From positions 1,302,001 to 1,366,000 of the forward strand of contig JAMWBK010000005.1 of assembly GCA_029953675.1 (NCBI GenBank): 64,000 bases of DNA, in the 5' to 3' direction. The translations under genes were made by a program, and so were the position numbers. The notes below the pieces were generated by a model. The model saw only the letters and a program-made list of their open reading frames with translations, had not been told where the DNA came from and ran no database searches. Below, one piece after another: positions 20,408 through 45,143 of this stretch; the first letter of the stretch is position 1; each line of letters opens with the position of its first letter. Origin of the DNA: Rhodosorus marinus CCMP1338 (Eukaryota > Plantae > Rhodophyta).

Positions 20408-20899
20408 CCGCCGAAACAAAGTACTCAACGTACGAACAGGAGTTGTACGCGCTATCAACGGCAATCTTGCACTGGCGGGTGTACTTAGAGGGAACCCGAT
20501 TTACAGTGAGAACCGACCACAACCCGTTGAGATTCTTACACTCGCAGAAGGAGCTTACTAAACGTCAAGCGAGATACATAAACCGGTTGATGCCGTTGCA
20601 GTTCACTATCGAGTACAAGAAAGGCAAGGAGAATATCGCCGATGCGTTAAGTCGGCATGCCATCCAACACTTGGCAATTTCGTCGATCAACAGCGACCTC
20701 AACTGGCAGCATACTTCTGGTCTTCCCGGTACACCTCGCTGAATTCTGGGTCTTGGAGGTAAACCTGCTAAGAATCTCAACGGGTTGTGGTCGGTTCTCA
20801 CGGTAAATCGGGTTCCCTCCAAGTACGCCCGCCAGTGTAAGATTGCCGTTGATAGCGCGTACAACTCCTGTTCGTACGTTGAGTACTTTGTTTCGGCGG
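20408..20899. repeat. Inverted duplication in the gypsy RNase H: arms 20408-20538 and 20769-20899
   Basis: 131-bp arms with about 4 mismatches; the same peptide [30 protein letters not shown] is read on both strands. Confidence 0.95.
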
Positions 20900-21847
20900 C
20901 CGAAAATTCTTCGAAAAGTAGGCGACTGGGTGTTCGCCATCGTCAAATTTTTGAAGTAAGACAGCTCCAGCTCCTCTATTGCTCGCGTCCGTACACACGA
21001 TGAACCCTTTTCCGAAGTCAGGGTTGTGCAAAACTGGTTCGTTTGATAGTTTTGTCCGCAAACTATCGAAAGCTTTTTGCTGCCGTGCTCCCCACTGAAA
21101 CTTAACTCCCTTCTTTGTCAACTCTGTCAGCGGTGCCGCAATTAGGCTGAATCGCGATACGTAATTTCGTAGGTAGCCCGTAAAACCCAGAAAGGATCTG
21201 ACATCTTGAACATTCTTCGGGGTTCGCCAGTTTTTGAGAGCAGCTGCTTTGCCGGGGTCCGGTCGCCGTTTCCCGCTTCCAACTAGGTGATCCAAATACT
21301 TCGTCTCGGGAACTCCAAGAGTACACTTTGATAGCTTGGCAAACAATTTATGTTTGCGTACTTTGTTGAACACTATACCCAGGTGCCTTCGGTGTGTCTC
21401 CAGGTTCGGCGAATAAATGACGATATCGTCGAAGAAAATCATGACAAAGTCATTAAGCTCGTTGAAAAAGATGTGGTTCAAAAGTCTGGTGAACACTGCC
21501 GGTGCATTTGTCGGACCGAATGGCATGACAAGCCATTCGTATAGTCCGAATGGTGTTGTGAGTGCCGTCTTCTGGATATCCTCCTCTTTCACTCTTAGTG
21601 GCCAGTATCCACTCCGCAGATCGACCACACTGGGGTAAGATGCGGTACCCAACGCATCGAGGCAATCATCAATCCGCGGCGGATTCGTTTGATTCGCAAT
21701 TGTCTGCTGGTTCAATCTCCTGTAATCAATACACAGCCGCTTACCGCCATCTTTTTTGTCAACAAAAAGGCAGGGAGACGCGAAAGGAGATGAACTCGGC
21801 CGAATCAGCTTTCTCTGTAACAAGTTCTGTAGCTGTTCCTTTAGTTC

Positions 21848-26314: not shown

Positions 26315-28097
26315 GATTGGAAAGCCTTCACAGCTTTAAATTCTTCAGTCTTGACCTATTCCGACTTCTAGAGCTGCCTGTTGAAGCTTTACCCCATCCC
26401 AACGACGTCCATATCTACCACCTAAGCCAATCGTGACCTTCCCCAACAAGAGAAAAACTTAGATCCATTGGGGTTTTGATGCTAAATTGATTTTTGATGT
26501 TTTGAGGCGTGTTTCGTTTTTACCGCGAATATAAACCAATGAAGATCTATGTTCATGCAGAGCTTCTAAATAAGTTTTGTTATTAAATATATTTTAGCCA
26601 ATGAGTTCCGATCTGTTTCGAAGTGTTTTTGAGGCCTAAGATATGGCGCGACTGCGGGAAACCATCCGAGTGAAGATGTTTATTCGAAAACGCTCTGGGG
26701 AAGGCCAACTTTTAGCAAGCAAGCCATGGAACATGGTTGGAATGCCTTCGTCTGTGCAACTGCTAAGTGGGAGATTTGGTTTTTGAATCGTTTCGGAGGG
26801 TTTGGTGCGAGTGGAAGGGGTCTATTTTCGATACGATGGTTGAAATGCTTTCGTTGAATTGAAACCGGCGGAACATGAACGTAAAGATGGTCCCCATATC
26901 GTCCGGGTGAAATTTACTCAGAAGGTTTCTTGGCTGCCTCTCTTATCACCTCCAGAACACTACCAACCTGAGCCCTGCAAGATCCACACGACATACGCTT
27001 ATTCACCAACTATTGCGGAAAACGGCTACAGAGATATCTACTTACAGTAATTTTATGTGCTCGCATTGCCGGAAACTCGAGATGTAGCCCCACCGCCTTG
27101 CCAAGTCAAATACCAGAACCAAAACAATCGAACAACGGACGCACAAAATATTCCTCATCAGCTGCCCGGAGCATAATTCGACATCAGCAGAGAAGAATGT
27201 CACATCCCTTGCGAGAGCACTTTCCCCACGCTCTTATTTCCCAACGGTCTAGTGGATAGCACTCGACCAAAAGCAAAACCTCGGAGACTACATCGCAACC
27301 GCAAACTTAATTGAATGGTAAAGTTACCATTCAGTTCAATCATTTACGAACAGATATTGAATGTATTAGGAAGAAACAATATAGTCAATCAATAAACGTT
27401 CGGAAATAGTGGCAAGCTCATGATGCTGCTGTATAAATTTACGAAGAAAAAAGGCCGATAAAGGATGTAGAAATTCAGTTGGAAAGCCGTCGAAAAACTC
27501 CTTCGGAAGACTTCCATCCATGGGCTCCTGGTAAGTTGGTGAACGCTACTGGTTATGAAAGGATCCCGTTTTTGTCTTCCTAGTCCGTTTATATTATGAA
27601 TTGTCATCTGACGAGAGGAACTGGAAGGTTTCTTCATTGTTTCCGTCCAAGCTCTAATCCCTTATGGCATTTGCGACCGTCTTTGGAGTAGTTTTCGGCG
27701 AGATAGCCAATCATACCACACGAGTGCCTCGTTCTGAATTTGAATCTGGCACAGGAGGAGCGCTCGAGTTCTTGTTCAGCGTTTTGCTGTTTAAATATCT
27801 TTTCGACACTGTGCACGTGTCCTCTTTGCGACGTGAGCTTGAACGCACAAACTGAACATTTCAACGCAAAGCAACTTTCTATGTGCGCGATTGTGGGTAC
27901 GACCGGTTGGTTCTTGAATGCTGAACCGCATCCCGGTGCACAACCATAGAAAGGTATAAATGCTAAAGCTCTGCGCGTCGGAATAGTTTGAGCCACGACG
28001 AACAAGACCATCCGAGAACTTGGAAGACATAGAAAAGAACCATATCAATCAGTTTTTTCAAAGAGTGCTTGCTGCAGAATTAACGCGAACAAACGGA

Positions 28098-28595
28098 ATG
28101 CATTTTAAGGTTTGTAACGAGGTTGAAATTGCGCCGGAGAAGGCATGGGACCTGATAGCTGACTTCTCTCATGTTCAGCACATACATCCACTGGTGGAAA
28201 AGGTGGACCAGCTGAGTGAGAACGAAACTGGACTCAATGCAGTCAGAAGGTGCCACTTTTACAACGGAATCAAGGTTGAGGAGCAGATCGTCGAATGGAA
28301 CGAAAAAGACATGAGGTACAAGATACAAGTGGTCAAGGGCAAGATTCCAGTGAAAGACATGGTTGCAGAGCTCATCGTTGAAGAAATCTCTCCAACGAGG
28401 TCCAGAATTATTGGTAACATTCACGTCGATCCAAAATATGGAATCTTGGGACAGCTTATGGCCCGATTTGCTATGAAACCAAAATTCGGTACAGCTTTAG
28501 GGGACCTATTCTCTGGTACAGAGTATTATATGCGGACTGGTCGGGACGTGCCAGAAAACTGGCATGGACCTAAGCCAGTGATTACTGCTTCCTAA
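28098..28595 (+). CDS. SRPBCC/START-fold protein (polyketide cyclase/dehydrase-like, bacterial type), paralog 1
   Basis: 165 aa, no CDS introns; EKAWDLIADFSHVQHIHP, GLNAVRRCHFY, EWNE, DPKYG; TATAAA at 27955. Confidence 0.9.
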   Translation: MHFKVCNEVEIAPEKAWDLIADFSHVQHIHPLVEKVDQLSENETGLNAVRRCHFYNGIKVEEQIVEWNEKDMRYKIQVVKGKIPVKDMVAELIVEEISPTRSRIIGNIHVDPKYGILGQLMARFAMKPKFGTALGDLFSGTEYYMRTGRDVPENWHGPKPVITAS

Positions 28596-30533
28596 TTCGA
28601 TGTGTCAAACTTAGTGAATGAACTACAATTGACAAGCCAATTTATCTGTACTAATGATTACTGGGCATTTAGTTCGGGGTTAACCTAGTTGTTGAAAGGT
28701 AGTAGCACAGTATCAACGTAAAGAAGGTATGAACTACAAAAGAACTGTGGGCTAAGGCACGGAAAGCTTCGAGTGGCAGGTGTATTCCGAAAGAACAGGG
28801 ACCCTCAACCCCCGTGCCTAAAATCCCAGCAAACGGCGGTGCTCTTGAATTCGGAACAGTGATAAACTGATCGCATGTGATGACCCAACAAGCTTCATGC
28901 TGAAGGGATCACGGTCTATCCAGTAGAACGATGAGAAGAATTGTTTGCACCCGAAGGGAAACTGGGCATCAGTTTGGAGCTGCCCCGATCAACACGCCAA
29001 GCGTCGGGCATGACCGTTGGACGACGCGCTTCTGCGGAGTTTCTTAATGATCGCTCAGCTATTTGCGGAAACTTTCAACTGATAGCAATGAAATATGGTC
29101 AACCTGAATCCCTGCAAACGATCTGTGCAGCAGGATTGCAACGAACGGCCTAAACCGCTGCACGACCGCGGAACGAGACTGTCGCGGGGCGGGCCAGATG
29201 ATCTTTGGATCTGGAAGAAGAAAAGCCCAAATTTTTGGTATGCAACTAGGAGCGTTCAGCCACGTTCTTGCTGCTTCCCCCTTCCTCTAACCGAGCTGGC
29301 CAGGATGAGTTTCTACCATAGCCACCTCTAGACAAAGGTGTCCATGAGCTACGCTAGTGATAAGATTCTTTGTGAAGAGCCGTTAGATCCGAAGGAGCGA
29401 TATTCCCGACGAGTCCACGAACTGTAACACTGTCACGTCCTGACGAGACAGTAAAAGCACGGCCCGAGGGCTAAAGTGGAGAATCGTGACGAGATTTGGC
29501 ACGCTATCCTTAGCCTATACTACAGTAACTATGACATATCTTCAGGGGTTAGCTCGAAGGGAAGGAAAACGAAAAAACCAGAGGTAGAACTAAGAAGTCG
29601 AATCTAAGACACAAGCAAGAAGCTGGTTTACGAAGAAATTGAGCAACAGGACAAACTTCACCTAAGAACGTTTCAAGCCACCAAAATCAAAGCCACACCT
29701 GTCCGATCTCAATTCCCCAATTTCCGAATCCAGAATTAGAAATCATATAAAAACAAGTAATTTCGCTGTCCGTCAACCATATCTAATATCTTCAAAACAA
29801 CACAATATGGTAAAACAATTGTATAAACGAATAAATTATGTAGTGAAGAAATGTCGAAATGAGTTCCTCTTTAAAATATTACGATTCACATATTTCGTTA
29901 AACCTTTTTTCGAAATAAGTGAAAATACTGAATATCAAATATAATATAAATACAAAAAGTAATGTTTAGTGAATATGTTTGGGTCCTTTTTCGCATTGTC
30001 CGACAGACACCAAGTTTCGAAATGTCCGCATGAGTGTGAGGGGTAATATTTTGTGCTTAGAACTAGAGTAAAATTGTTTTCTATTTAAATTATATCACCT
30101 TGTGTATCGGCAGGCTCTTTTCTAGAGGGTTGTATCATTTTTAACACCTCCAGCAGACTTGAATCTCTGCGTACGGATATTCTCGGCTCGAACATGGGCA
30201 TTGAAGGATGAACTGGAGATCGACTAGGAAGCTGGGATGAGGAAAACCCTCCTGCGTGAAGGGCCTTATAAAGACGTTCATATCATTGCACCTTGAAGAA
30301 CTGCTATCCTCGATTTGAGGTAGATTTTCCTGCGGAGTAGAAAAGAAATCGGGCCTTGTTCCCTTGGTCGGAACCGAGTTAAGCTTTTCAGCTCTTGCGT
30401 CTCAGAGCCGAGTAGAATAAATAGATAGTGTGCACAAGAAAATTTCCAGCGGTTTCAGAGGATCAAGAGCATCAAGAGAAAACGGAGCAAGAAAAGAGAA
30501 GTAAGGCTGCGGTTGAACCCCAGGAAACGCAAG

Positions 30534-31031
30534 ATGCATATGAAAATTACGCGCGAGGTGCAGGTTTCAGCTGAGAAATGCTGGGAATTGTTGGGTGACT
30601 TCTCCAACATATACCACATCCATCCTATGGTGAAGACCTCCACTCCATTATCTGAGAACGATCGGGGTTTAGGAGCAATTAGGCAATGCGACATGTACGA
30701 CGGTAACTCGATTCAAGAGAAGGTGATAGAATGGGATGAAGAGAATATGTCTTACACCATTACTCTTATAAAGGGGAGCCTTCCCATAAATCAGATGAAT
30801 GCTAAGGTGAGCGTTGAAGCTAATGGCGGGACTCAATCGGCACTCGTTTGCGATGTGGAGTTTGATCCAAAACATGGATTTATCGGAAAGCTAATGGGAC
30901 AACTCATAATGAAGCCGAAGTTCGGTGGAGCACTCGGAGACATGCTTGGAGGAGTCAAATACTACTTGGACGAAGGAGACGACGTCCCTGAAAACTGGAA
31001 GGCCCCAGGAAAAGCAGTCATTGTTTCTTAG
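30534..31031 (+). CDS. SRPBCC/START-fold protein, paralog 2
   Basis: 165 aa; EKCWELLGDFSNIYHIHP, GLGAIRQCDMY, EWDE, GSLP, DPKHG; TATAAA at 30267. Confidence 0.9.
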   Translation: MHMKITREVQVSAEKCWELLGDFSNIYHIHPMVKTSTPLSENDRGLGAIRQCDMYDGNSIQEKVIEWDEENMSYTITLIKGSLPINQMNAKVSVEANGGTQSALVCDVEFDPKHGFIGKLMGQLIMKPKFGGALGDMLGGVKYYLDEGDDVPENWKAPGKAVIVS

Positions 31032-32848
31032 AGCACACAAGTCTACGTGGTTATAGCCGATTGTAGTGGAAGCCAAAATTTTGTATTACAGTATGCCTTA
31101 CACACGTGGGAAACATTAAAAACGCAACCAAGAAGAATTCATGCTTTGAAGACAGTCCCTCGCTCGTCTTTAAGTCTTCCCGGAAACCGTTTAATGTGCT
31201 CAGAATTGGATTCTGGCTGCTTCCGGATGGGGGGCCTTCCGCCCAAGATTCTCCCTGTTGGCAGCCTAACGAAATTTATCGTGTCTCTACCCGGAGCCTA
31301 TTTTGGTCTCCATGTCAACGCCTGGAGTTGGGTAGTGGTTCCTCGTCTGCCATCGTCACGTTCAAACTATGAATGAATGAACGCCCGAAGCCACTTTCGA
31401 GTATGTCTTTCGAGATTTCAAATAAAAAATTAAAAGCAAACAACTAGTTGCTAATAATAGATAGTCCAATATTATTTTCCATTATTCTATCATACTGATA
31501 CGTTCCGCATTAAAAAAACACCTGGTTTGGCACGCTGTAAATTTAGATAAGAACCCGACCAGACAGATATAATGCGAATAAAATTCGTAGATATATAGAA
31601 CTAAAACAAAAATCAAATGTATGGCTTATCGTTTCACGATAGTTTTAGATGTACTCGAGGGTATTTAACTTTTGCATTTGTATTTTATTATGACGAGTGA
31701 GAAGTAACTGATTTATGATGAACTCTATGGCCGATGTGAGGAGGATTTATCCTCCTGAGGTCTCCGTGCGGATCCGCTGGTCGGTTTGCGGGGAGTCCGT
31801 GGGATATAGAATTGGGAGATAGTTCGGAAAGAATTCGGATCCTTTTCGTATTGGTGTGTAACATGATGGGAAGATCGGTTCGGTTCCATGAATTTACATC
31901 ACTCAGCAACTCCAGCGCATTGGTTTTAGCAGGGTTGATGGGCTTCGCATTTCAGAGAACGGGGTTATACTCTCAATTTAGCCCAAGTTGGAGTATCAGG
32001 GGTCATATGTAGAGTTCAATCCTGGAAAACCCGAGGGGAGGGGCGGGAGAAAAGGAGGGGGTGCTGCTTAGGCAAGGCCCTTTGGTATGTATGCCCAGGA
32101 AGCGAAGGGTGGTTCCGAGAACATTAATGAACTCCCTCAACACCAGAGTGAAGAAAATTCAGTCCCTTCCTTTCTACGCCAAGCTAGAATCATACACAAA
32201 CAACATGGAGTCTAAACCCCACAATCCCGAAATGTTTTCAACCCTTTCTTACATTCAGTCAAATACAAACCAAAAATCTCTTGAAATTAGTTTTTCTTTT
32301 CATTTCAGCACGGCCATCCTGCTTGAACTTGACTGAGTTCTTGATTGAACTTGTTATTACCCTGCGTGTGGGTAGAGTTTTAAAAATTACCTGTGAGAAT
32401 AGGAAGGACGTTGGGAATAGGAGTGCGCAGAAATTGTTACCATATTACTACAGGGTTGGAGCACATCGGTAGCGTCTTCATGCCGCACAACCATCCATCC
32501 CCTGCGTGCGATGACTGATTGAGCCTTGGCCATTGAGGTACGCGTTGAGAATTCGTTGCCGCTTTGGGAGTGCTCAGACACGCAAGCCCAACTGATGCCT
32601 CTCGATGTTCAGCACCACGGTCGTATGAGCATTGTTATTCCTGGAACCCTTCAAATACGGTGAATTTAATGGGGGGCTGCACCGCAATCGTTCGGAGGTG
32701 CTCATCAACCAACGTGAATCTTGGACTTGTGTGTGCCGTGATCCGATGCGCCCGCGCTCATACTTTCAGAACCGCACAGCCTTTGCGGGTGGATGTGCGC
32801 ACCGCCTTCAGACAAGTCGCCCAGTCCGCATTTGCTTTTCACTTCGAC

Positions 32849-32855
32849 TATATAA
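32849..32855 (+). promoter_or_regulatory. TATA box of MBL copy 1 (mirrored at about 38120 for copy 2)
   Basis: TATATAA about 100 bp upstream of the ATG, conserved in both arms. Confidence 0.6.
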
Positions 32856-32952
32856 GGAAGGGAACTTGACCATAACCCATACAACATCGATAAGCCACAG
32901 ATAAGAACATAGACCAAAGACAACCAGGCGGATAAGAGGAGGAATTCAAGAG

Positions 32953-34086
32953 ATGAAGATTGCTTTTGTGGTAGTCATACTAGCGAGCACTGCCGTGGCG
33001 TTTGCAGGGAAGTGCGAGGACGCCGTTCCGGAGTGTGTGCGGAAGCTTGAGAATGGTGAGCGCTGCGACCCTCTACCTGTTCCCGACCGACTGCTGGAAA
33101 CCATTCCACAGATCCCCGACGTCGGATACAAGATCCAAAAACTTCGCAACATGGTCTACATGGTGACCGACGGCTTCTTCATTGCGATGGTGATAAAGAC
33201 CCCCAGGCAGCTCGTTGTGATCGACGCGCCGGAGAACTTCTTCGTTGTGCGAGATCCAAACACCGGAGCTGTTATCGGAAACCTCATGACAAATGCAATT
33301 GAAGACATCGCCGGAGATCTCAATCCAAAGATTGTGCGGTTCATCTATACCCATCAGCACTTTGATCATATCGGCGGCGCAAGGATCGTCTACGATTACC
33401 TCAAGAAAACCTACCCGAAGGCCGACCTGAAGGCAATGGCCCATGAGAGTATTCTCAAGCGGCTGGCCAGCGCACAGTCTAAGAGGGCACCCCTTCCAGA
33501 AGTTGTGATCATCCGGTCAAGAAGTTTGAGACTCACCAAGAATCTGAAGGTCAATCTCATCCCAACCGACGGTGGACACTCCGACTCGGACCTGCTCGTT
33601 CACATCCCACCCAAGGCTGGCATGCCGGGCATTGCGATGCTCGTGGACATTGCATTCCCCGGCTGGATCACACCGTTCGGCATTGGCTTGGTCAACGACA
33701 TCAACGAGTACATTGACCAACACGAGCGGCTGCTGGCACTGGACTGGGAAATATACATTGGAGGCCACCTGGGACAGCCTGGAAATCGGGCGGACATTGA
33801 AATATCGGAGGAGTACATCAGGGACATGGTTGACATCGCGGCGCAGTCGCTCGCGCTAGGACTGGGTCAGCCAATCCCGGAGCTTCAGGAAGCGTTTGAC
33901 CCGACAAGCCCCAACTTTGGGAACCAAATGCGAGCGATCCAGGGTGTATTCGGGATGGAAGGAATTTTCGTTGGAATTTGCGAAGCTCTTCTGGTAGAGA
34001 AATGGGGGTGCCGACTCGGTGGGGTGGACATCTTCTCTCGTGAGCACTGCTTCGCTGCTGTGACGTTCCAGAGGCTGGACAACTAG
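32953..34086 (+). CDS. Secreted metallo-beta-lactamase-fold hydrolase, copy 1
   Basis: Signal peptide MKIAFVVVILASTAVAFA; metal motifs THQHFDHIGG, GGHS, VDI and GGH; intronless, 377 aa. Confidence 0.93.
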   Translation: MKIAFVVVILASTAVAFAGKCEDAVPECVRKLENGERCDPLPVPDRLLETIPQIPDVGYKIQKLRNMVYMVTDGFFIAMVIKTPRQLVVIDAPENFFVVRDPNTGAVIGNLMTNAIEDIAGDLNPKIVRFIYTHQHFDHIGGARIVYDYLKKTYPKADLKAMAHESILKRLASAQSKRAPLPEVVIIRSRSLRLTKNLKVNLIPTDGGHSDSDLLVHIPPKAGMPGIAMLVDIAFPGWITPFGIGLVNDINEYIDQHERLLALDWEIYIGGHLGQPGNRADIEISEEYIRDMVDIAAQSLALGLGQPIPELQEAFDPTSPNFGNQMRAIQGVFGMEGIFVGICEALLVEKWGCRLGGVDIFSREHCFAAVTFQRLDN

Positions 34087-34624
34087 TCGTTTTGGTAGTT
34101 GTAGGAAGTTGTGCGCTGGCTGTCACGACTGGTACATGATCCGGAGGCTCTGAGTGCTGTTTGAACGTAGAATCCGTTTCTGGTTGTGACTCAAGAAAAG
34201 CATGAAATTAAAGTCCGTCTGATTCCTTTCAATACTCCATAGGGCCTACTGCTCTGACTTGTGAATCCGTAATAGACCGTCACCTGAGCACCGGCCACGG
34301 TTCGAGGCCAACCCTTGCTCGAGAAAGGAAAAACCCAGCTTTCATGTCGTTCCTGCTTTCAAGCATGCCAGATGATTTCCAAGATTTTGCACATCCAGCA
34401 ATGGATTAGGTGCTCGAAAAACTAGGCTCTGCTCCGTTGCTTTCTGAGAAACAGAGCAGCAGTGGGGGAGCGTTGATGATCTGTGCTCGTCGGTATTTCT
34501 TCTTTTTGTGAAACTTCCCAAGTCAAAACTAGCTGAGAACTAAATCTTCAACATGAATTTTGGGTGGTTTTCGGTAGTGGAGGAGTGTTGACGATAAGCC
34601 AGGAGCTTAAAATTCATCAAGCTT

Positions 34625-34674
34625 CTAGTTATCCAGCCTCTGGAATTTAACAGCAGTGAAGCAGTGCTCACGAG
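34625..34674 (-). pseudogene. 3'-terminal stump of a third, diverged MBL paralog
   Basis: Encodes REHCFTAVKFQRLDN* versus REHCFAAVTFQRLDN* in the intact copies; about 6 mismatches in 50 bp; ends about 25 bp before the copia edge. Confidence 0.85.
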
Positions 34675-34697
34675 CGACCGTCAGTGGTCAATGTTCT

Positions 34698-35935
34698 TGT
34701 TAGCAAACATGCACAATCGACACATCTTTTCGGTGGGTGAGTGATTGCTAAACAGCCGAAGCAACCAAAAAAGCGGCTGGGAAATTCTCACCGGCAAGCA
34801 AGAAGACTTCGAAAATATGTATCTGTTCGGCTGTCTAGCAATCGCTCACCCACCGAAAAGATGTGTCGAGCATTCAAGAAGCTAGGGATCACCCTAGACA
34901 CGACGCCCCCATACAATGATAAGAAGTCAAAGAAGTTACAAACTTACCACGGCAGGTAAGGTCAGGCGCGATAGAGAAACCCAAGTTGAACAGCTTAACG
35001 ATAATCAAGGAACCTGGTCGCTGGTGGACAGACCAAAGGATGAGCAAGTGCTAGGCAACAAATTTGTTTTCAAGCTGAAGAAGAACGACGGCGGGGAGCT
35101 GCTGAAATTCAACGGCTGGTCGCAAGAGGTTTCCAGCTCGAGAAAATACACGAAGCGTTCAGAATGAGCCAGAGAAAGCCAGTGCCAACGCCGATGACAA
35201 AGGACTATATACCAACAGATAAGTCCGGAGGCAACAAGAGTTCCCTTACCTTGAACTCGTCGGGGCTCTACTGTACATTCCTACAAGAACCAGACCCCGA
35301 TATCACTACGCCGTTAGGCCACCAGCCAGAAAGGCGCAATGCTTCAACAACGACGAGTGGTCAGCTGGAAAGCGAATATTAAGGTACTGACGAAGCACAA
35401 TCAAAACGCGTCACTAGTCTTCTCTCCAAAACAAGAACATGAGGAGATCACACTTTACATAGACGCGTTATGGGCATCACCAAAGGACCGAAAATATGTA
35501 CCGGCGCTTTTGCATACCTGACGGAAACCCGAACGTGTACATAAGCAAGGAGCAGACAATGATCGCGACTTTATCGAGCGAGGCAGAGTACATCGCGCTG
35601 ACGTACGGACTTCAGAAAGTGCAGTGGGTGAAGAACCTACTGGCAGAGTTTAACCGGTATTACCTACCAAGGCCTTCTCGGATAACACTGCCAGTCTCAC
35701 TTGGAGTATAGACCCTGAAAAACCACTACCAAAACATATCGATCTGCAAAATCAATACGCGCGACAATAACACGACCTGGGAGGCTACGAGTTCCTATTC
35801 ATCCCGACCCAGGAGCAAGCCACGGATATGCTCACGAAGGCGCTAGAGGCGACTAAGTTTAACAGCACAGAGCCAAGCAGAGAATCCTAACGGGCGTCAC
35901 TTCCGGGAGGAGTGTTAGCAAACGTGCACAATCGA
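34698..35935 (+). mobile_element. Internally deleted Ty1/copia LTR retrotransposon
   Basis: Integrase-like GITLDTTPPY, RT-like TWSLVDRPKDEQVLGNKFVFKLK, RNase H SSEAEYIAL, KHID and DMLTKAL. PPT GGGAGGAG at 35905-35912 is followed by TGTTAGCAAACGTGCACAATCGA; the same start occurs at 34698. The 3' LTR end is not resolved. Confidence 0.88.
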
Positions 35936-36838
35936 AGCGACTCCTACCACCATGAAGACTTTGTCAGAGTTCCTGATACGGTAGCCATCCCAGCGCATGG
36001 CCTTGAAACGTGTTGACGGAGACACTGAACTACCAGGCCCGAGAAAGGAAACTAGCATGTTGAATTGAGACACAGACGTGTAGACTATAAAGTGACTTGG
36101 AAGCTTTGGGGGGAAACCAAGTTGAAGCTTATATGAGCCAAGCTCATTGACATACTAGTGAGGGAGACTCTAAGATAATTAACAACAGACACAACAAGTA
36201 AAGGCACAAAAGCCTAATTTCGTCAACACCTTTTAGGTGCGAGCTCATAGTCAATTACAAATAGGTGGTAATATCCCTTCGTATCGGAAGACCGAGAAGA
36301 TTTGCACATCACGAAAAAAGCATGCATTCAGTATTGCCAGTTGCTAGAAATGCACGGATCGCTAAGCAAGTGGATCAGTGATCTTAGTTACGCCCTGCCC
36401 ACATTCCCACTCCCTCAAGTCATTTGATGTTGGATAGCGAAGATGCATCGCGAGATCCGAAGGCCAATCCAAAAAGTAGCGAACATTCCGATTCTTGACG
36501 TGCAGTTATCAGGTCATGAATAAAGGTCTAAGCAAGTAGACGTGGACGCTGCAGCTTGCATATCGTTTCCTCTTCAATCCTTCTGATGAAAAAGATCCGG
36601 GCCCAGCCGGAGTTGGCCTCTTAACCGTAGCCAGCGCTCAGGTGACGGTCTATTACGGATTCACAAGTCAGAGCAGCAGGCCCTATGGAGTATTGAAAGG
36701 AATCAGACGGACTTTAATTTCATGCTTTTCTTGAGTCACAACCAGAAACGGATTCTACGTTCAAACAGCACTCAGAGCCTCCGGATCATGTACCAGTCGT
36801 GACAGCCAGCGCACAACTTCCTACAACTACCAAAACGA

Positions 36839-37972
36839 CTAGTTGTCCAGCCTCTGGAACGTCACAGCAGCGAAGCAGTGCTCACGAGAGAAGATGTCCA
36901 CCCCACCGAGTCGGCACCCCCATTTCTCTACCAGAAGAGCTTCGCAAATTCCAACGAAAATTCCTTCCATCCCGAATACACCCTGGATCGCTCGCATTTG
37001 GTTCCCAAAGTTGGGGCTTGTCGGGTCAAACGCTTCCTGAAGCTCCGGGATTGGCTGACCCAGTCCTAGCGCGAGCGACTGCGCCGCGATGTCAACCATG
37101 TCCCTGATGTACTCCTCCGATATTTCAATGTCCGCCCGATTTCCAGGCTGTCCCAGGTGGCCTCCAATGTATATTTCCCAGTCCAGTGCCAGCAGCCGCT
37201 CGTGTTGGTCAATGTACTCGTTGATGTCGTTGACCAAGCCAATGCCGAACGGTGTGATCCAGCCGGGGAATGCAATGTCCACGAGCATCGCAATGCCCGG
37301 CATGCCAGCCTTGGGTGGGATGTGAACGAGCAGGTCCGAGTCGGAGTGTCCACCGTCGGTTGGGATGAGATTGACCTTCAGATTCTTGGTGAGTCTCAAA
37401 CTTCTTGACCGGATGATCACAACTTCTGGAAGGGGTGCCCTCTTAGACTGTGCGCTGGCCAGCCGCTTGAGAATACTCTCATGGGCCATTGCCTTCAGGT
37501 CGGCCTTCGGGTAGGTTTTCTTGAGGTAATCGTAGACGATCCTTGCGCCGCCGATATGATCAAAGTGCTGATGGGTATAGATGAACCGCACAATCTTTGG
37601 ATTGAGATCTCCGGCGATGTCTTCAATTGCATTTGTCATGAGGTTTCCGATAACAGCTCCGGTGTTTGGATCTCGCACAACGAAGAAGTTCTCCGGCGCG
37701 TCGATCACAACGAGCTGCCTGGGGGTCTTTATCACCATCGCAATGAAGAAGCCGTCGGTCACCATGTAGACCATGTTGCGAAGTTTTTGGATCTTGTATC
37801 CGACGTCGGGGATCTGTGGAATGGTTTCCAGCAGTCGGTCGGGAACAGGTAGAGGGTCGCAGCGCTCACCATTCTCAAGCTTCCGCACACACTCCGGAAC
37901 GGCGTCCTCGCACTTCCCTGCAAACGCCACGGCAGTGCTCGCTAGTATGACTACCACAAAAGCAATCTTCAT
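36839..37972 (-). CDS. Secreted metallo-beta-lactamase-fold hydrolase, copy 2 (identical protein)
   Basis: 377-aa translation identical to copy 1. Confidence 0.93.
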   Translation of the reverse strand: MKIAFVVVILASTAVAFAGKCEDAVPECVRKLENGERCDPLPVPDRLLETIPQIPDVGYKIQKLRNMVYMVTDGFFIAMVIKTPRQLVVIDAPENFFVVRDPNTGAVIGNLMTNAIEDIAGDLNPKIVRFIYTHQHFDHIGGARIVYDYLKKTYPKADLKAMAHESILKRLASAQSKRAPLPEVVIIRSRSLRLTKNLKVNLIPTDGGHSDSDLLVHIPPKAGMPGIAMLVDIAFPGWITPFGIGLVNDINEYIDQHERLLALDWEIYIGGHLGQPGNRADIEISEEYIRDMVDIAAQSLALGLGQPIPELQEAFDPTSPNFGNQMRAIQGVFGMEGIFVGICEALLVEKWGCRLGGVDIFSREHCFAAVTFQRLDN

Positions 37973-40900
37973 CTCTTGAATTCCTCCTCTTATCCGCCTG
38001 GTTGCCTTTGTTTCCTTTTTTCGCTCCGCACGGTCGAGTTCTTTTAGCCTTCACTGTTTGTCTATGTTCTTATCTGTGGCTTATCGATGTTGTATGGGTT
38101 GTGGTCAAGTTCCCTTCCTTATATAGTCGAAGTGAAAAGCAAATGCGGACTGGGCGACTTGTCTGAAGGCGGTGCGCACATCCACCCGCAAAGGCTGTGC
38201 GGTTCTGAAAGTATGAGCGCGGGCGCATCGGATCACGGCACACACAAAGTCCAAGATTCACGTTGGTTGATGAGCACCTCCGAACGATTGCGGTGCATCC
38301 CCCATTAAATTCACCGTATTTGAAGGGCTCCAGGAATAACAAAAAAATGCTCATACGACCGTGGTGCTGAACATCGAGAGGCATCAGTCGGGCTTGCGTG
38401 TCTGAGCACTACCAACAAAATTTCGTATCTCCGAACCGAAACGGGTAAAAGCCCCCACCCTGCATCACGCAAGGGATTTTCGTGCGCCAATAATACTCTA
38501 AGGGCCGTGTCACCCCACGAGGAGTATTGTAACCACTTCTTCGCACTCCCATTACCACCGTCCTTCCTATCCTCTTAGAGCTCATTCACCAAAATCTACA
38601 AACACGAACAGGCAATATCAAGTTCAATCAATAAATCAGTCAAAATCAAGTGGATGGCTGTGCTGAGATAAGTCGAAAAAAGAAAAACAAAAACATTTCC
38701 CCCTAGCGCGAGATTTCTCCTCCCATTTGATTGAATAACGGGAAGGCTAAAACGATTATAAAATGACCGATTGTTCTTGTAGTGTTTTGGTTTATAATTA
38801 GATGGATCCTCAAAAGGTTACCAAAAAATCAAACATGTTGAGGTAATGGTCAATACTGTTATGTTCTTTGGAGCCATTCTACAGGCCCGGCTGAAGTGCG
38901 TCTGAGGTTTTCAAAGCGGGTTTCTACGCGACTTGGAAAGGAAGGGGTTATGGTTTCTGGATGGGATATCTGGAGGTACTATTGATGTGACAGCATCATA
39001 CCCACTGGAAGGAATCCGCAGGCGTGCTGAGACTCGCATGGAACCTCCTGCGGGGTGAGCGACTCAATGAGGAGAGGCTAGACGTTTAGGGCTAGCGCTT
39101 TCGCGATGAAGCACGCTAAACCGGAGTCCTAGGGCGGAACATTAAGAACGATGAATGACTCCGAGCTAGACATTTTTCATCCTATCAAAACTATCCGCTG
39201 ACAAGTTGTAGAATCTTCTTACCCCTAATATCTTGCCGTTGCGCCCGCGAAGTTCAGACAGAGGTGCGTGCCTACAATTCCCACGGCTTAGGAGCACTAA
39301 TTGGCTCCTCCGTCGTAATCCGGTAGTTGTGGCGTGTTCACTTGAGTAGTTGGTACAAAGACGGCGAGCAGTAGAGGATGAATAAAGTTCAAACTGCTTC
39401 GCCGTGCCGCGAACAACAATACCCGTTCGGCGGGGGCTTTATCATGGGTATCAATTAAAACGAACGTACCCTCCGTTCGTGTCAAGCTGTTCGTCCTCGA
39501 ACCAAGCCATTCGTCGAGACGAACATGAAAATACTTAATGTTTTATGTGCCAAACCCGCTCTGCGTGACTCAACGAGGCAACAGAACTGCGGAATCGTTG
39601 CAAAATCATCATCCAACAAAACTTTACCTTCCAACTAGCACTGCGGAATGACCAAGAACACATAAGACCCTCCAGTTTTACTAGCTCTCGTAAGGCTTAT
39701 CGAAACCTAGGGAAAGCTCCAGACAACTCCTTCACCATTCAACAAAATCATAAAACAATATTTGTGAACCTTTTTATCTCAAAATATATATACACAAAAG
39801 AAAATTTACACATCACCACATAAATCATCATAATTTCAATACCCGTGTTCGCCCGTGAAGCCTAGAAATCAAGTATTTCTTAATAAAAACAAACAAAAGT
39901 TTTGTCCTTCCTAATATTATCCAAAACACCATATCTCCGATTTTGATTTGGGAAGATATAATCCAATCACAGATCGCTAAAAGAGGAAGGAAGGATTTTC
40001 ATCAAAATTGTATCAATAATTTTATGTCCTAGTAAGCAAATAAGATTTGAACATTATGAATAAATTGGGAGTTTTTTTAAGGAGGATAGAAAATATAAGA
40101 TCTTTCTACGCGAGGGAGGAGCGAAAACCAATTCTCGAAATTCTATCGCCATGTGTAATTTAGGAATTCTTGTCTAGGTTTGGACGGGCTTGAGCTGAGT
40201 TGTCTTAAACCTACGAAAGGCTTTTTCACCTTTTGTTGGGTCCAAGGTATTCCGTAATGGTCTTCATCCATTGACGAGAAGATCATCTCTGACGTCCCCT
40301 GCAGACGTGATCATCGAAATTGCTCTTAGCACCGCGTTCTGAATAAGGGGAAATTGATCCCCCAACACCCGGGAACCAGTAATGAATGACGATGCCGCTA
40401 GCGTTGTTTTCTTGTCCTGAAACCTTGCAAGTTGTTTCAGCTCGGACCAAGGATTTCTTATACCGGATCCTTGGCTTTCGCCTTACCTGCAACTCCCCCT
40501 TGAGGCGAAAGAAGGGATCGTTTCCATGACAACCAACACAGCAGCTGAAATGTCCTGTTTGGTTCCGGACGGATAGCGTCTACCAACTGCCAAACTTCGC
40601 CGGAATCGACAAAGTTAGCTCAAATGATTAAGGTCCCCGGATATCTTAGACTGTACCAAATCAAAAAATTGTGGCCTAAAGCTTTGCTTATATAGTCCTT
40701 CCAAATACCAAATATAGACCATCTATCCTTTTGTCAACTTCCTCATTTTACTGATCAGTTCCCACCATCCATCTATCGGGACCAGTACTGTTGAAAGCTT
40801 TCTCAACTCCGCGACTGACACCCGAACAAATTCTTCCGTTTTTTTTTCTGGATTGCTGAATGGCGAGAAATTGCAGATTGAGAGGATGGATTGCGAATGG

Positions 40901-41253
40901 ATGGGTGGGCAATGGCGAGCTAGTCTGGTTGTTACGGCATTTTGGGGTGGGACGTAGGGTTTGTGGTTGTGAGGCTCGATGGAAAAGGAGGATTTCTCTT
41001 GTTGATTCTAGAACTGGTTTTGTCTATGTTGCACATCACGTACGTCGTTAGATCTGCGCGTGGTGGAAGTGTTTTTGGGAGGGAGGAGAGGAGCTGGGGT
41101 AAAATCCCAGCGGTGGCCTTCTTGGTATAAAGGTGAGCCAACGGCGTAGTGGACTGTGGATGGGTCAGGAGTTTTTCAAGGTACTAGACTAGAGAGGTAG
41201 GGAGGAAAACGCCGTGCGTAAAATTTTTTTGGTCAAATTAGTTTGAGCGAGAG

Positions 41254-41751
41254 ATGGTTCATTTGGAAGTTCATCAGCTGGTTGACCTATCAGCGGAGAA
41301 GGCATGGGAGAGCGTGTCTGACTTTTCCAACGTTCAGCATATACATCCGCTTGTGAGGGATGTGGACCAGTTGACTGAAAACGGTAACGGGCTCGGAGCG
41401 GCTAGGAGGTGCCACTTCTATGACGACGGCACTCTGGAGGAGGAGATCATCGAGTGGGATGAACCGGCGAAACATTATAAAATCAAGGTTTTGAATGGCA
41501 CCCTGCCATTGAACAGCATGGTTATCACTGTCCGTGTGGAGGACGTGAACCCGAAACAGTCCCGCTTATTTGCAACGGTAGAGTTTGATCCGAAATACGC
41601 GTTCGTTGGCCAGTTGCTTGGGCGCTACATCCTGAAGCCCAAGTTGGGTGAGGTGCTCGGAAACATGCTTGCAGGAGTACAATACTACGAAAACAAAGGA
41701 TTCGATGTTCCAGAGGGGTGGAAAGCACCTCACAAGGCAGTGGTTGTATAG
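41254..41751 (+). CDS. SRPBCC/START-fold protein, paralog 3
   Basis: 165 aa; EKAWESVSDFSNVQHIHP, GLGAARRCHFY, EWDE, GTLP, DPKY; TATAAA at 41126. Confidence 0.9.
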   Translation: MVHLEVHQLVDLSAEKAWESVSDFSNVQHIHPLVRDVDQLTENGNGLGAARRCHFYDDGTLEEEIIEWDEPAKHYKIKVLNGTLPLNSMVITVRVEDVNPKQSRLFATVEFDPKYAFVGQLLGRYILKPKLGEVLGNMLAGVQYYENKGFDVPEGWKAPHKAVVV

Positions 41752-43110
41752 ATTTGGGCCAAAAGCACCTAAGTTACGACATGGCTGTATCTTACATTCG
41801 GATGTTTTCCATTAACCGAACTTCTGTTGATATGGGTTGTGAAAAGTCAATGACTTCGTGTATCTAATGTGTGTGGATATCGATAAAACTACAATTGTGA
41901 ATAGAGGCAATGCGGAGCTGGAAGGCGGTTGGTGCCACGAACGATTAATGAGAGCCCAGCCCCCCCCCCCCACTCCCCCCCGCCGCCGTGCAAAAGTCTC
42001 AGAGGTTTCCAATTTATCCACTCTTGTCATAGCGCTGAGAAAGACCTCATACGAGTCGGACCCTGTTGCTCAGCCCTTGTTGCGGCTGTTCAGGTTTCAA
42101 ACACACCGTCCCTGTGTCCAGAAAACAGGCAACGCCAACAGAAAGTCAGCCTCCAGTCCCGCCAAGTTCTTAGAAATTGGAGACAAACGACTGGGAAGCA
42201 TGGAAAACGAATCGTGCAGGGTACGAGGAGAGCAAAAGGCATATTGCCGGATCACGGAGCTCAGCCGTTCAACTCTAGCACCGATTAGTAGTCCATGCTT
42301 TCAAGGTGGGGCTCCATGCCCTTAGCTAAAGAGAGACGCTGGCGGGGCAAACAACTTGCAACCCAAAATGCAATCAATTTCCTCCGTGAAACCCAAAAAC
42401 TATTTCAATTTGAGCAAAGCGAAAAGGACCGGGAAGAAATTTTGTCCAATCGTTACCCGTGAATCTCCACCACGAGCAAAGTAGTCTTTTAAGGCAATCT
42501 ATAAGTTTCTGGGACAGAATATAAATATGAAAATAATTTCGCTGGGTGGAACACGGTAGATGATTCTTAAAGGGGAGGGACAGAAAAGTTCTGATCAAGA
42601 TATATTCCTATATATGTAATTTTTAGGAGCTTTTTGACACTAGATATGTATTTTTTACCTGGGGGAGGAATGAAACAACGGTATATCTTGTTTTAGAATA
42701 ATTTTAGATATGTTACGATATCTTTTAATTTTCATTTATTCCGAAATTATGTATTTTAGTATATTATTAGAGGATTGTTGAGTTGGAGTTGTTGAAGTTC
42801 GTCTTAGTGCAACTTCAGCACCGAAAAAGAGACTCATTCATTCAGTTCAGATTCTCTGGAGGTGCGAAAGACGGATGGGTATGATGGGCCTCAGTAGGCA
42901 GGTGGAGCCCGAAGCTAGAATGTTTTCCAGAGCCCGCAGTCAAAGGTACTGCGCTTCAGACATAAGCTCGTCTTGAGTAGATAAAAGGGGCGAGATTCTT
43001 GTACGCCGTTTGTTTGTGAGGAGCTGAGCTCTCGGGAAGAAGGGAAACGAGCAGTACGTCGGAAGCAAACTGAAAGAGATCTTCTGGTTGAACTCGTCAT
43101 AGTAGATGGT

Positions 43111-43641
43111 ATGGCTCAGATGAGAGTTGAGCAGGAACTGAATCTTCCTGTTGAAACGACATGGAAAATTCTGGCGGACTTCAGCAATGACCGCCATATC
43201 CATCCACATGTGAGAAGTGTGGAACGGATTGGTGAGCTTGAGAGGGGAGTGGGTGCTGCTCGGAAGTGTCATCTCCGTGATGGCGGTTGTATTACAGAGA
43301 AAGTAACGGCGTGGGACGAAGCTGCGAGAGAATATACGCTGGAAGTATTCAAGAGCCCCGAACCAAAGAAGCGGTTTTTTGCGACCCTCAGGGTCGAGGA
43401 GTGTGAAGCAAACAGGTCTAAGGCCGCAGTCGTGGTAGACTACGACCCGAAGTACGGATGCTGCGGTGAACTCCTCGGACGGTTCATCCTGCTGCCAAAA
43501 CTTGGTCATCTGGGCAGGGAATACCTTGACGTAACGCAGAGCTCCAGCAAGAAGAGGGAAGATGTCCCACCAAGTTTTCAAGTACCAAAAACGTCCAAAG
43601 TTCCCGAGACCATCCAGCAAAGTGTGAACACTTCGTCCTAG
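43111..43641 (+). CDS. SRPBCC/START-fold protein, paralog 4 (most diverged)
   Basis: 176 aa; TWKILADFSNDRHIHP, GVGAARKCHL, AWDE, DPKYG. Confidence 0.87.
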   Translation: MAQMRVEQELNLPVETTWKILADFSNDRHIHPHVRSVERIGELERGVGAARKCHLRDGGCITEKVTAWDEAAREYTLEVFKSPEPKKRFFATLRVEECEANRSKAAVVVDYDPKYGCCGELLGRFILLPKLGHLGREYLDVTQSSSKKREDVPPSFQVPKTSKVPETIQQSVNTSS

Positions 43642-44119
43642 GACAGCCGGCACCCTGAAGCGAACGGGGGTGACCAGTTGTGAGATGCTGCTTAAAAAAA
43701 CGTAGAAGCATGTATATTACAAAAATTACAATAATTCCCTTTCTTCACATCGTGAATTGGAAAATGTTTACAAATGATTTCGCATGCTCGGAGGGCGCTA
43801 TTTGATCGTACCTGCTAATGGGGGTGTGTGTCGAATTCTATTCCGGAAAAAGTTGATAAAATAATTTTTTATTCGAGTTTGGATGCTGTTTCTCATTGAG
43901 GAGACTAGGGGTGGTGTAAGGTTCATAGTTCCGACTGCTCAATCGTTTACAATGGAAGTGATTGAACTGTTGGATGTGGAGAATTTGATGCCCAACTCCA
44001 CGCAGCTGTGGGCGTTGGGTGCCCTTTGTCTTGAACAGGTGCTCTTTAACCCAATTTCTCTCTTTTTCCGATAGTGAGGGACGGAGTATATTCTCTTCCC
44101 TTCACTTGCTTAGTGCTGA

Positions 44120-44460
44120 TCGAAGCTGTGACGTGGAGGACCACTGAGCGGATCTGCTCGAGCGTCTTCCCCTTGCTTTTGAATCGAGAAATTTGCCCAG
44201 CTGCTGTTGGTCTCGACCAAGGACTCCAACGCGCTGGCGTTCAATACTCTCGTGGTGCGGAGCAGAAAAACAAATCTACTCAATTTCTCTCTTTCTCCGA
44301 GAATGCGGGGTCGAATATCCTCGTCTGCGCGCTTGTCTAGCGTCGATCGAAGCTGTTCTGTCGTAGGACCAACAACCGGCCCGGCGCGAGCGTCTTCGCT
44401 TGGCTTTTGAGGAGAGGAATTTTCCTATGTCCGTGGTGCTGTTGGTCTCCACCAAGGACG
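44120..44460. repeat. Diverged direct repeat of about 110 bp (44120-44235 and 44345-44460)
   Basis: Shared blocks gatcgaagctgt, ggacca, cgagcgtcttc, gcttttga and tgctgttggtctc.accaaggac. Confidence 0.75.
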
Positions 44461-44648
44461 AAAACGAGCTGTCTCAGCATGAAAATGGAATCTAGAACGT
44501 GTCAGTTTCCTTGTTCAGATGCGGTGACCGATAGTTCCTGCAGAAGAGTATATATAGTTGTCAACCACGGCACAGTCCGCCGTCGGTTCTTCTGAAGCTT
44601 GGAAGAGTAAGAGACGAAGCTGTCAGTATCGAAAACGAGTTATTAAGT

Positions 44649-45143
44649 ATGCATGTGAAGGTTATTCAAGAGCTAGATATCCCAGCAGCCAAAGCGTGGA
44701 AGCTGATGGCGGATTTCAACAATATTCAGCACGTTCATCCAATGGTGGTTAGTGTTGACCAGCTTGGCTCGAACGAACGCGGAGTGGGTGCAATGAGGAG
44801 GTGCAACTTTTACGATGGTGGTTCGATTCAGGAGAGAGTTATACTCTGGGACGACCAGAACATGAAATATCAAATTCAGTTCATGAGCGGAACGCTTCCA
44901 CTGAACTCAAACACTACTAGTATTATGGTTGAGGAAATCGACTCAGTAAAGTGCCGCATGATCTGTGACGTCGAATATGATCCCAAGTACGGGTTCATAG
45001 GGAAGATCATGGCCAGCTTGTTCCTGAGGCGGAAGTTCGGCAGCGTTCTTGGCGATATGTTGGCTGGTGTACAGTATTACGCTGAAAACCACGAGGACGT
45101 TCCAGAAGGATGGAATTCTCCAACAAGAGCGACGGTTGTCTAG
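44649..45143 (+). CDS. SRPBCC/START-fold protein, paralog 5
   Basis: 164 aa; KAWKLMADFNNIQHVHP, GVGAMRRCNFY, LWDD, GTLP, DPKYG; TATATATA at 44549. Confidence 0.9.
   Translation: MHVKVIQELDIPAAKAWKLMADFNNIQHVHPMVVSVDQLGSNERGVGAMRRCNFYDGGSIQERVILWDDQNMKYQIQFMSGTLPLNSNTTSIMVEEIDSVKCRMICDVEYDPKYGFIGKIMASLFLRRKFGSVLGDMLAGVQYYAENHEDVPEGWNSPTRATVV

Follow-up and report, generated by a model that had tools for sequence, protein, structure and literature searches.

The 64-kb stretch of DNA that we analysed (the window; approximately positions 1,302,001-1,366,000 of contig JAMWBK010000005.1 in the nuclear assembly GCA_029953675.1 of Rhodosorus marinus CCMP1338) carries five genes for SRPBCC proteins, and these five copies are a lineage-specific, selectively maintained expansion in a red alga. 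It is a real and fairly ordinary expansion of a gene family, drawn from an uncharacterised SRPBCC subfamily of bacterial type. SRPBCC domains bind or transform small hydrophobic ligands, and most SRPBCC proteins are binders. The explanation that best accounts for the whole, and in which we place about even confidence, is that the array represents an expanded cytosolic family that would handle small hydrophobic ligands, with reactive or xenobiotic compounds as substrates, and that would be of old bacterial origin. The five genes are already public, annotated as hypothetical or SRPBCC-family proteins.

Open reading frames (ORFs) and matches to the Pfam model PF10604 (Polyketide_cyc2, cut-off 27.4 bits), which all five copies match at 51.6-58.1 bits, agree on five + strand genes coding for 164-176 amino acids (aa), as a first-pass annotation of the window had proposed (Table 1). 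Copy 1 has no in-frame ATG upstream and no N-terminal targeting extension, and a tblastn search of the window with the five proteins gave no extra copy and no pseudogene. The array described in that annotation proved to be five co-oriented genes, although split into two blocks (copies 1-2 and copies 3-5) that lie ~10 kb apart, with spacers of 1-2.6 kb between the SRPBCC genes and with a sixth, diverged R. marinus paralog on another contig. This paralog, NDN08_003981 (P0098 in our alignments), encodes 178 aa in a single exon on contig JAMWBK010000010.1 (contig 10; L022, 6001-6537). It retains the C-terminal tail motif described below and has lost HP, R50 and E62 (residue numbers throughout are those of copy 1), and it has either been neofunctionalised or is decaying.

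The public annotation of the assembly gives a single exon to five of the five SRPBCC genes. For copy 3 we could compare the gene with a transcript contig, L001 (959 nucleotides, nt), from another Rhodosorus strain in the Marine Microbial Eukaryote Transcriptome Sequencing Project (MMETSP). It encodes a protein (P0001) that is 92% identical to copy 3, and it is colinear with window positions 40988-41911, which comprise copy 3 with 266 nt upstream and 160 nt downstream. Because the alignment is gap-free, there is no intron in the coding sequence of copy 3 or in the covered flanks. These results bear out the lack of coding introns noted in the first-pass annotation, and its description of the genome as intron-rich agrees with the published assembly of 31.2 Mb, 8392 genes and 24,821 introns (PMC10250338). 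The genome average is ~3 introns per gene, and all six Rhodosorus SRPBCC copies are intron-free. The comparison of copy 3 with L001 by the Nei-Gojobori method gave a synonymous divergence (dS) of 0.34, a nonsynonymous divergence (dN) of 0.037 and a dN/dS of 0.11, and copy 3 is under clear purifying selection. Copy 5 also has an expressed ortholog, the protein P0002 (UniRef A0A7S3E803, from an R. marinus MMETSP0011 transcript), which is 89% identical over the full length.

Bacterial-type proteins in intron-free ORFs are what would be seen if the SRPBCC genes were not algal at all and had entered the assembly by bacterial contamination or misassembly. However, the genes are integrated in a contig of 3,187,197 nt (3.19 Mb) among eukaryotic neighbours (an NDUFS1-like complex I subunit, a TP_methylase, an aminotransferase, a DUF547 protein, NFACT and an Fpg glycosylase). 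Several of these flanking genes span more than their coding sequence and are intron-bearing (the NDUFS1-like, NFACT, aminotransferase and DUF547 genes), and remains of gypsy and copia elements occur among them. The genes lie 1-2.6 kb apart with no bacterial gene as a neighbour, and Rhodosorus orthologs, with the purifying selection just described, are found in independent MMETSP transcriptomes. On the genomic context and the transcripts we dismiss contamination and misassembly, to which we attach practically no probability.

Pairwise identity among the five proteins is 34-51%, and 27 alignment columns are invariant. These include W17, D22, F23, H28, H30, P31, R50, C52, E62 and W67, and also D111-P112-K113 and D150-V151-P152; the motifs DF..H[IV]HP, R-x-C, W[DN][ED] and DPK[YH] that had been listed earlier are all present in the five copies. 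When 1.84 billion cluster representatives were searched exhaustively with HMMER, 1942 relatives were found at E<=1e-3, 509 at <=1e-10 and 8 at <=1e-30, and residues were counted in an alignment of 158 non-Rhodosorus relatives, consisting of the best 150 HMMER matches and other matches. Among these, R50 is kept in 156, E62 in 157 and C52 in 150, and counts for the remaining conserved positions are 149 (W17), 145 (P31), 151 (G45), 154 (P84), 136 (K113) and 155 (G118). The subfamily signature W17, [H/N]30-P31, G45, R50-x-C52, E62, P84, K113, G118 is complete in the five copies, and its residues other than H30 are kept in 86-99% of the relatives. Judged by this alignment, a large, mostly bacterial PF10604 subfamily is marked out by R-x-C combined with E62. 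Position 30 is H in 99 relatives (63%), N in 32 (20%), S in 11 and A in 8, and position 28 is mostly K (40), R (33), N (16), D (11) or A (10). The H-x-H-P/R-x-C signature of the first-pass annotation is therefore invariant in the five copies, but its first His is confined to Rhodosorus, and H-x-H-P as such is, among the aligned sequences, a peculiarity of that genus.

The copies were also said to resemble bacterial SRPBCC proteins, and among solved structures they are closer to bacterial than to plant members. Sequence-profile E-values were best for the bacterial proteins 2le1 (2.5e-13), 7tmu (6.4e-12) and 3f08/3cnw (~1e-6), with the plant proteins, namely lachrymatory factor synthase (LFS; 3.5e-5), CSBP and the PYLs (~2e-3), falling between 3.5e-5 and 4e-3. 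The second Pfam model, PF03364, scored 16.8-22.3 bits in the five copies, under its cut-off of 23.4 bits, and NCBIfam holds no model for the five proteins. A literature search found no link between Rhodosorus and polyketide-cyclase or SRPBCC genes.

Table 1. Positions of the SRPBCC genes and of other features in the window (MBL, metallo-beta-lactamase)
Feature	Position	Strand	Remarks
SRPBCC copy 1, 165 aa	28098-28595	+	ORF, single exon, publicly annotated; PF10604 52.1 bits
SRPBCC copy 2, 165 aa	30534-31031	+	ORF, single exon, publicly annotated; PF10604 58.1 bits
SRPBCC copy 3, 165 aa	41254-41751	+	ORF, single exon; PF10604 56.3 bits; expressed ortholog in another Rhodosorus strain
SRPBCC copy 4, 176 aa	43111-43641	+	ORF, single exon; PF10604 56.1 bits
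SRPBCC copy 5, 164 aa	44649-45143	+	ORF, single exon; PF10604 51.6 bits; expressed ortholog in R. marinus MMETSP0011
TATAAA, candidate TATA box	27955-27960	+	143 nt upstream of copy 1 ATG
TATAAA	41126-41131	+	128 nt upstream of copy 3 ATG; conserved in other strain
TATATATA, candidate TATA box	44549-44556	+	100 nt upstream of copy 5 ATG
Repeated segment, ~80 nt	44049-44129, 44278-44356		~300-600 nt upstream of copy 5
Left arm of inverted duplication	32322-34302	+	carries MBL-fold gene 32953-34086 (+), not SRPBCC family
Right arm of inverted duplication	36623-38650	-	carries identical MBL-fold gene 36839-37972 (-)
Ty1/copia-type fragments, frameshifted	34900-35711		between the arms
Antisense ORF, 237 aa	42940-43653	-	over copy 4
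Antisense ORF, 114 aa	28080-28424	-	over copy 1
Ty3/gypsy reverse transcriptase/RNase H ORF	20798-21823	-	RVT_1, RT_RNaseH_2; ~6 kb upstream of array
Tandem repeat	6425-6943		units 201 and 143 nt, ~1.9 copies, 89-90% identity; just downstream of Fpg glycosylase region

Origin and expansion of the family

A profile scan of genome contigs named Poribacteria, Methylococcaceae, Polyangiaceae and Nannocystales (myxobacteria), Shewanella surugensis and other Proteobacteria as bacterial hosts of relatives, and one relative comes from a cyanobacterial metagenome-assembled genome (MAG). Bacterial relatives are 21-40% identical to the algal copies; a scan of metagenomes yielded relatives of <=35% identity only and no close donor. 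In a neighbour-joining (NJ) tree of 165 sequences, with taxon labels missing for most relatives, the five copies cluster with the two MMETSP orthologs (bootstrap 41/100) among many bacterial sequences, and this grouping supports the expanded family proposed earlier. The copies branch as (c4,(c2,(c1,(c3,c5)))), and copy 4, with the longest branch, is the most diverged, its C-terminal helix and tail being altered and its core signature retained. The next group out contains P0019, P0020, P0021, P0022, P0023, P0030, P0056, P0058, P0122 and P0098, and the whole has a bootstrap of 10/100. P0021 lies on an MMETSP contig (L005), convergent with a eukaryotic RPB5 gene, and P0056 on a 7.6-kb contig whose coding density is very low. 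The Rhodosorus copies, P0098, P0019, P0020, P0021, P0030, P0122 and P0153 have in common a derived C-terminal tail, [VI]-x-x-[GN]-[WF]-K-x-P, whereas ~41 relatives end instead in G-[KERQ]-x-G, the ending of those with bacterial gene context. Another red alga, Madagascaria erythrocladioides, also has a member (MMETSP1450 transcript), which is possibly a culture contaminant.

We favour a bacterial origin because the subfamily is broadly distributed in bacteria and embedded there among regulators, occurs only here and there in eukaryotes, and has no introns although its host genome is rich in them. The transfer would be old and not specific to the array, since the nearest relatives share the derived tail, at least one of them is eukaryotic, and another red alga has a member. 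An old bacterial origin that predates the expansion is thus plausible on these comparisons, not proven, and the transfer may be shared with other eukaryotes. Of the horizontal acquisition suggested in the first-pass annotation, the broad occurrence in bacteria, the patchy occurrence in eukaryotes and the lack of introns remain as support, but base composition shows no trace of it, the tree is weak and at least some of the near relatives are eukaryotic.

Some of the same observations would suit a different history, that is, vertical inheritance from an early eukaryote or archaeplastid, or endosymbiotic transfer from the cyanobacterial ancestor of the plastid, followed by loss in most lineages. 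This would explain the absence of a compositional anomaly, the relatives in at least one other eukaryote (L005, beside RPB5) and in another class of red algae (Madagascaria), and the single relative from a cyanobacterial MAG; the tree, moreover, is too poorly supported to demonstrate that the copies nest within bacteria. However, all six Rhodosorus copies are intron-free against ~3 introns per gene, and bacterial homologs in a TetR context are equally similar (up to 40%, P0003) as the eukaryote-like ones (36-46%). Furthermore, among the relatives with a readable source, the non-bacterial ones are red algal and eukaryote-like only, with no plant or green-algal member, although a source name is given for only a minority of the top 150 representatives. 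We consider vertical or endosymbiotic inheritance rather unlikely.

Predicted pocket and proposed function

An AlphaFold2 model of copy 3, calculated from a 27-sequence alignment (pLDDT 96, pTM 0.89), has the helix-grip fold, with seven strands, two short helices and a C-terminal helix (116-148). Foldseek matched the model to many SRPBCC structures with probability 1.00, and the best matches in the PDB were YPO0625 (7tmu), 'XoxI' (3cnw), 3f08, PYL2, CSBP and Tfu_2981 at TM-scores of 0.70-0.86, the first five of them at 0.72-0.86. By homology to LFS and PYL we infer an internal cavity for hydrophobic ligands. Pocket residues were mapped with a hidden Markov model alignment to onion LFS, numbered after the LFS structure paper (10.1101/142687), so that the mapping conveys positions and no distances. 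In this mapping, R50 and E62 correspond to R71 and E88 of LFS, a buried dyad, and H30, V33 and C52 correspond to the Floor residues M51, L54 and V73. P31 (LFS P52) is outside the pocket-residue lists, and H28 (LFS K49) is outside the LFS pocket-residue list. The equivalents of the LFS Wall differ between copies 1-5, with I/N/G/G/G at position 58 (F84), I/I/I/L/I at position 76 (Y102) and V/L/V/V/F at position 78 (F104), and position 88 (Tyr114) is M/M/M/F/N. The pocket-lining segments therefore do vary, as the first-pass annotation had it, and the alignment suggests a constant polar floor (Arg-Glu pair, Cys and His) beneath a variable wall.

That annotation also considered that the conserved His and Cys could bind a metal. 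H28, H30 and C52 are invariant in the five copies and in the MMETSP orthologs, and in a metalloprotein these three residues would form a site in the pocket. Such a site is unlikely because the first His is Rhodosorus-only and its place in the mapping is outside the pocket. The 158 relatives have K/R/N/D/A at position 28, which aligns with LFS K49, a residue absent from the LFS pocket list. It lies two residues before the floor position, and with polar or charged residues there in the relatives, H28 is expected to face away from the floor. Position 30 is often N (32), S (11) or A (8), together about a third of the relatives. We therefore hold the metal site to be very improbable.

Our proposal for the expanded ligand-handling family is as follows. 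At some remote time an ancestor of the algal lineage most likely acquired the gene from bacteria, in which it is usually a singleton with its own LysR or TetR regulator responsive to small molecules, often beside an EamA exporter. Each copy would be a small cytosolic helix-grip protein without a targeting peptide, taking a small hydrophobic molecule into its pocket. Arg50 and Glu62 would form a buried dyad as in LFS and PYL, and His30, Val33 and Cys52 the pocket floor. This polar floor, with the Cys thiol next to the Arg-Glu pair and His or Asn in addition, would anchor the ligand or act on it. Lipophilic compounds that are reactive or xenobiotic would be the most likely substrates, for example quinones, unsaturated carbonyls and oxylipins, and duplication may have broadened the ligand range, the pocket-wall equivalents differing between paralogs. 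A conserved core with variable pocket-wall positions fits the diversified ligand handling that had been suggested. It is most likely that the products are cytosolic and bind or transform small hydrophobic molecules.

The gene context of the bacterial relatives points in a similar direction. We sampled 65 bacterial or metagenomic loci, 14 of which were too short to judge, leaving 51 assessable. A LysR gene is adjacent in 22/65 loci (20 divergent and directly upstream, 2 otherwise adjacent) and a TetR gene in 12/65, with TetR within 2.5 kb in 20; 17/65 have neither. In 34 of the 51 assessable loci the gene is a singleton beside LysR or TetR, and the algal locus lacks such a context, which is unsurprising in a eukaryote. 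EamA-family exporters also recur (11 loci), as do an AraC-cupin regulator, DUF1330 and an SDR, and in two of the TetR loci an Old Yellow Enzyme or a zinc alcohol dehydrogenase is present too. This context is typical of an inducible gene handling a small molecule, and as evidence from context it gives soft support to a role with lipophilic or reactive compounds.

In one metagenomic relative, P0080 (294 aa), the R-x-C SRPBCC domain is fused to a glutathione S-transferase (GST) C-terminal domain. This is a single instance. The fusion is possibly a Rosetta-stone hint to thiol or electrophile chemistry, and it could be a gene-call artefact.

Perhaps the proteins perform no catalysis and, as passive binders, carriers or receptors in the manner of PR-10, CSBP and PYL, only sequester or sense a hydrophobic signal or metabolite, the dyad being structural and Cys52 part of the pocket lining. 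Binding is the usual role of SRPBCC proteins, and PYL2 and CSBP are among the top Foldseek matches. The Arg-Glu pair is conserved in PYL receptors too, where it does not touch the ligand, and LFS Floor mutants retain activity (10.1101/142687). On the other hand, the Cys is present, at a buried position, in ~95% of relatives and E62/R50 in ~99%, which is stricter than a simple hydrophobic lining would require, and the bacterial oxidoreductase and exporter neighbours and the GST fusion suggest turnover of compounds. Passive binding is a possibility we take seriously, although we do not think it probable.

A bolder proposal is that the R-x-C...E floor defines an undescribed family of SRPBCC enzymes or thiol sensors. 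The buried Cys, activated by the dyad, would capture or isomerise lipophilic electrophiles (quinones, oxylipins, enals), and the family would extend from LysR/TetR singletons in bacteria to the algal array, which would be a battery of these enzymes, gained from bacteria and differing in wall specificity. We regard this as improbable.

Several points weigh against the expanded ligand-handling family of old bacterial origin. Copies 1, 2 and 4 had no transcript match, in searches too insensitive for this absence to count, and a k-mer comparison of the five upstream regions gave no shared motif that would suggest co-regulation. The five genes have a G+C content (GC) of 0.46-0.52, and of 0.51-0.61 at third codon positions (GC3), within the range of neighbouring genes, so that there is no compositional trace of foreign origin. 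With NJ support as low as 41/100 for the Rhodosorus group and 10/100 for the wider tail-motif group, the history of the expansion and the direction of transfer are tentative. The idea of electrophile handling or detoxification is built on gene neighbourhood and one fusion only, and the presumed His30-Cys52-Glu62-Arg50 cluster comes from the alignment to LFS, not from distances. Finally, because alanine mutants of the LFS Floor residues were still active (10.1101/142687), catalysis cannot be deduced from a floor position by itself.

If the proposal is true, the array adds a case in which a bacterial gene for small-molecule handling became fixed and multiplied in a red alga. Much of the gene inventory of red algae was lost, and transfer and duplication are thought to have refilled part of it. 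In the array, one pocket with a constant floor occurs in five natural versions, which makes the array convenient for working out the chemistry of an uncharacterised bacterial SRPBCC subfamily (~1900 cluster representatives). It neither opens nor settles a long-standing question.

Upstream regions and other features of the locus

We searched the upstream regions for the TATA-like hexamer TATA[AT]A, whose background is 0.55 per kb per strand. Most of the genes had been described as having a TATA box about 100-145 bp upstream, and this applies to copies 1, 3 and 5 (Table 1) but not to copy 2, whose sole TATA-like hexamer is at -267, or to copy 4, which has no TATA-like hexamer upstream. Three hexamers inside a 46-nt band (-143, -128, -100) exceed chance. 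The 300 nt upstream of copy 3 (40960-41253, compared with L001 1-299) are 87% identical between the strains. By our own estimate, synonymous-site identity at a dS of 0.34 would be ~72%, and because 87% exceeds this value the region upstream of copy 3 is constrained. The TATAAA of copy 3 lies within the transcript contig of the other strain, which runs ~140 nt further upstream. The element is thus only a candidate promoter element. Upstream of copy 5, a segment of ~80 nt is repeated 229 nt apart with 71-78% identity.

The spacer between the two blocks contains an inverted duplication. Its arms share 100% identity along 1388 nt and 96-99% beyond that stretch, as the result either of duplication or gene conversion of very recent date or of a collapse in the assembly. 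Each arm carries one of two identical intron-free ORFs of 377 aa, in which the N-terminus resembles a signal peptide and an HQHFDH zinc motif is present. The ORFs match the MBL fold weakly (Lactamase_B, 28 bits) and the VarG and subclass-B1-like models of NCBIfam far below threshold, and a PDB sequence search with the protein gave no relative of solved structure. These ORFs could be a second bacterial-type gene at the locus, for example a secreted hydrolase or lactonase. We rejected a functional SRPBCC-MBL gene cluster, as MBL genes are not recurrent neighbours in the 65 bacterial loci. The peptides of the fragments between the arms are copia-like (RVT_2 E-value of 5e-4, below threshold), and a copia-type element may have mediated the rearrangement.

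Two ORFs run antisense to copies 4 and 1; both are absent from the public annotation and are probably spurious. A Ty3/gypsy ORF and a tandem repeat were seen outside the array (Table 1). Scans of the window for tRNA genes and Rfam families found no element.

Comparison with known systems

The best matches in both sequence and fold are Tfu_2981 of Thermobifida fusca (2le1), YPO0625 of Yersinia pestis (7tmu) and Q6HG14/'XoxI' of Bacillus (3f08, 3cnw). Like the Rhodosorus copies, they are single-domain helix-grip proteins of ~150 aa that keep the equivalents of the Arg and the Glu. However, they have no Cys after the Arg, the corresponding residues being R-V-F (2le1), R-R-V (7tmu) and R-H-L (3f08/3cnw), and they lack the C-terminal V-P-E-x-W tail seen in the Rhodosorus copies. 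All of them are structural-genomics proteins of unknown function and add no mechanism.

The LFS of Allium cepa (5vgl, 5gte) shares the PF10604 helix-grip fold, its catalytic Arg71-Glu88 dyad aligns with R50/E62, and its Floor with H30, V33 and C52. The E-value is only 3.5e-5, LFS catalysis proceeds without a Cys, and Tyr114 and the aromatic Wall (Y102, F104, F84) are mostly aliphatic or small residues in the Rhodosorus copies. We rejected membership of the LFS family, given that Tyr114 and the aromatic Wall are absent.

The PYR/PYL/RCAR receptors and CSBP resemble the copies in fold (Foldseek E ~1e-10, TM ~0.75) and in the conserved Arg-Glu pair. The receptors are characterised by an SGLPA gate, an HRL latch and a floor Lys that binds the carboxylate of abscisic acid. 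The five copies have neither the SGLPA nor the HRL motif, the sequence match is marginal (2e-3), and the His of the Rhodosorus floor is a candidate equivalent only of the PYL floor Lys. With the gate and latch motifs missing and the similarity marginal, we rejected membership of the PYL receptors as well.

The first-pass annotation had said that the proteins resemble bacterial polyketide-cyclase/MxaD-like proteins. They belong to PF10604 (Polyketide_cyc2), and the defining features of neither family are present. Type II polyketide aromatase/cyclases (TcmN, ZhuI) are of the PF03364 type and are encoded within a KS/CLF/ACP gene cluster; PF03364 is below cut-off in the five copies and there are no polyketide synthase genes among the neighbours, and we rejected this class. 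Periplasmic SRPBCC proteins of the MxaD/XoxI type have a signal peptide and lie in a methanol-dehydrogenase gene neighbourhood. The Rhodosorus proteins begin at strand 1, with no signal peptide and no upstream in-frame ATG, and the MxaD type was rejected; the neighbouring genes include no mxa/xox-like genes at the locus.

The lipoxygenases of Bangiales (PhLOX) have an N-terminal SRPBCC domain of marine-bacterial type that has been proposed to be horizontally acquired (PMC11507377). In that case the domain is fused to a lipoxygenase and occurs in another red algal class, and any kinship to the present subfamily would be conjectural. PhLOX is a published earlier example of an SRPBCC module of marine-bacterial type in red algae.

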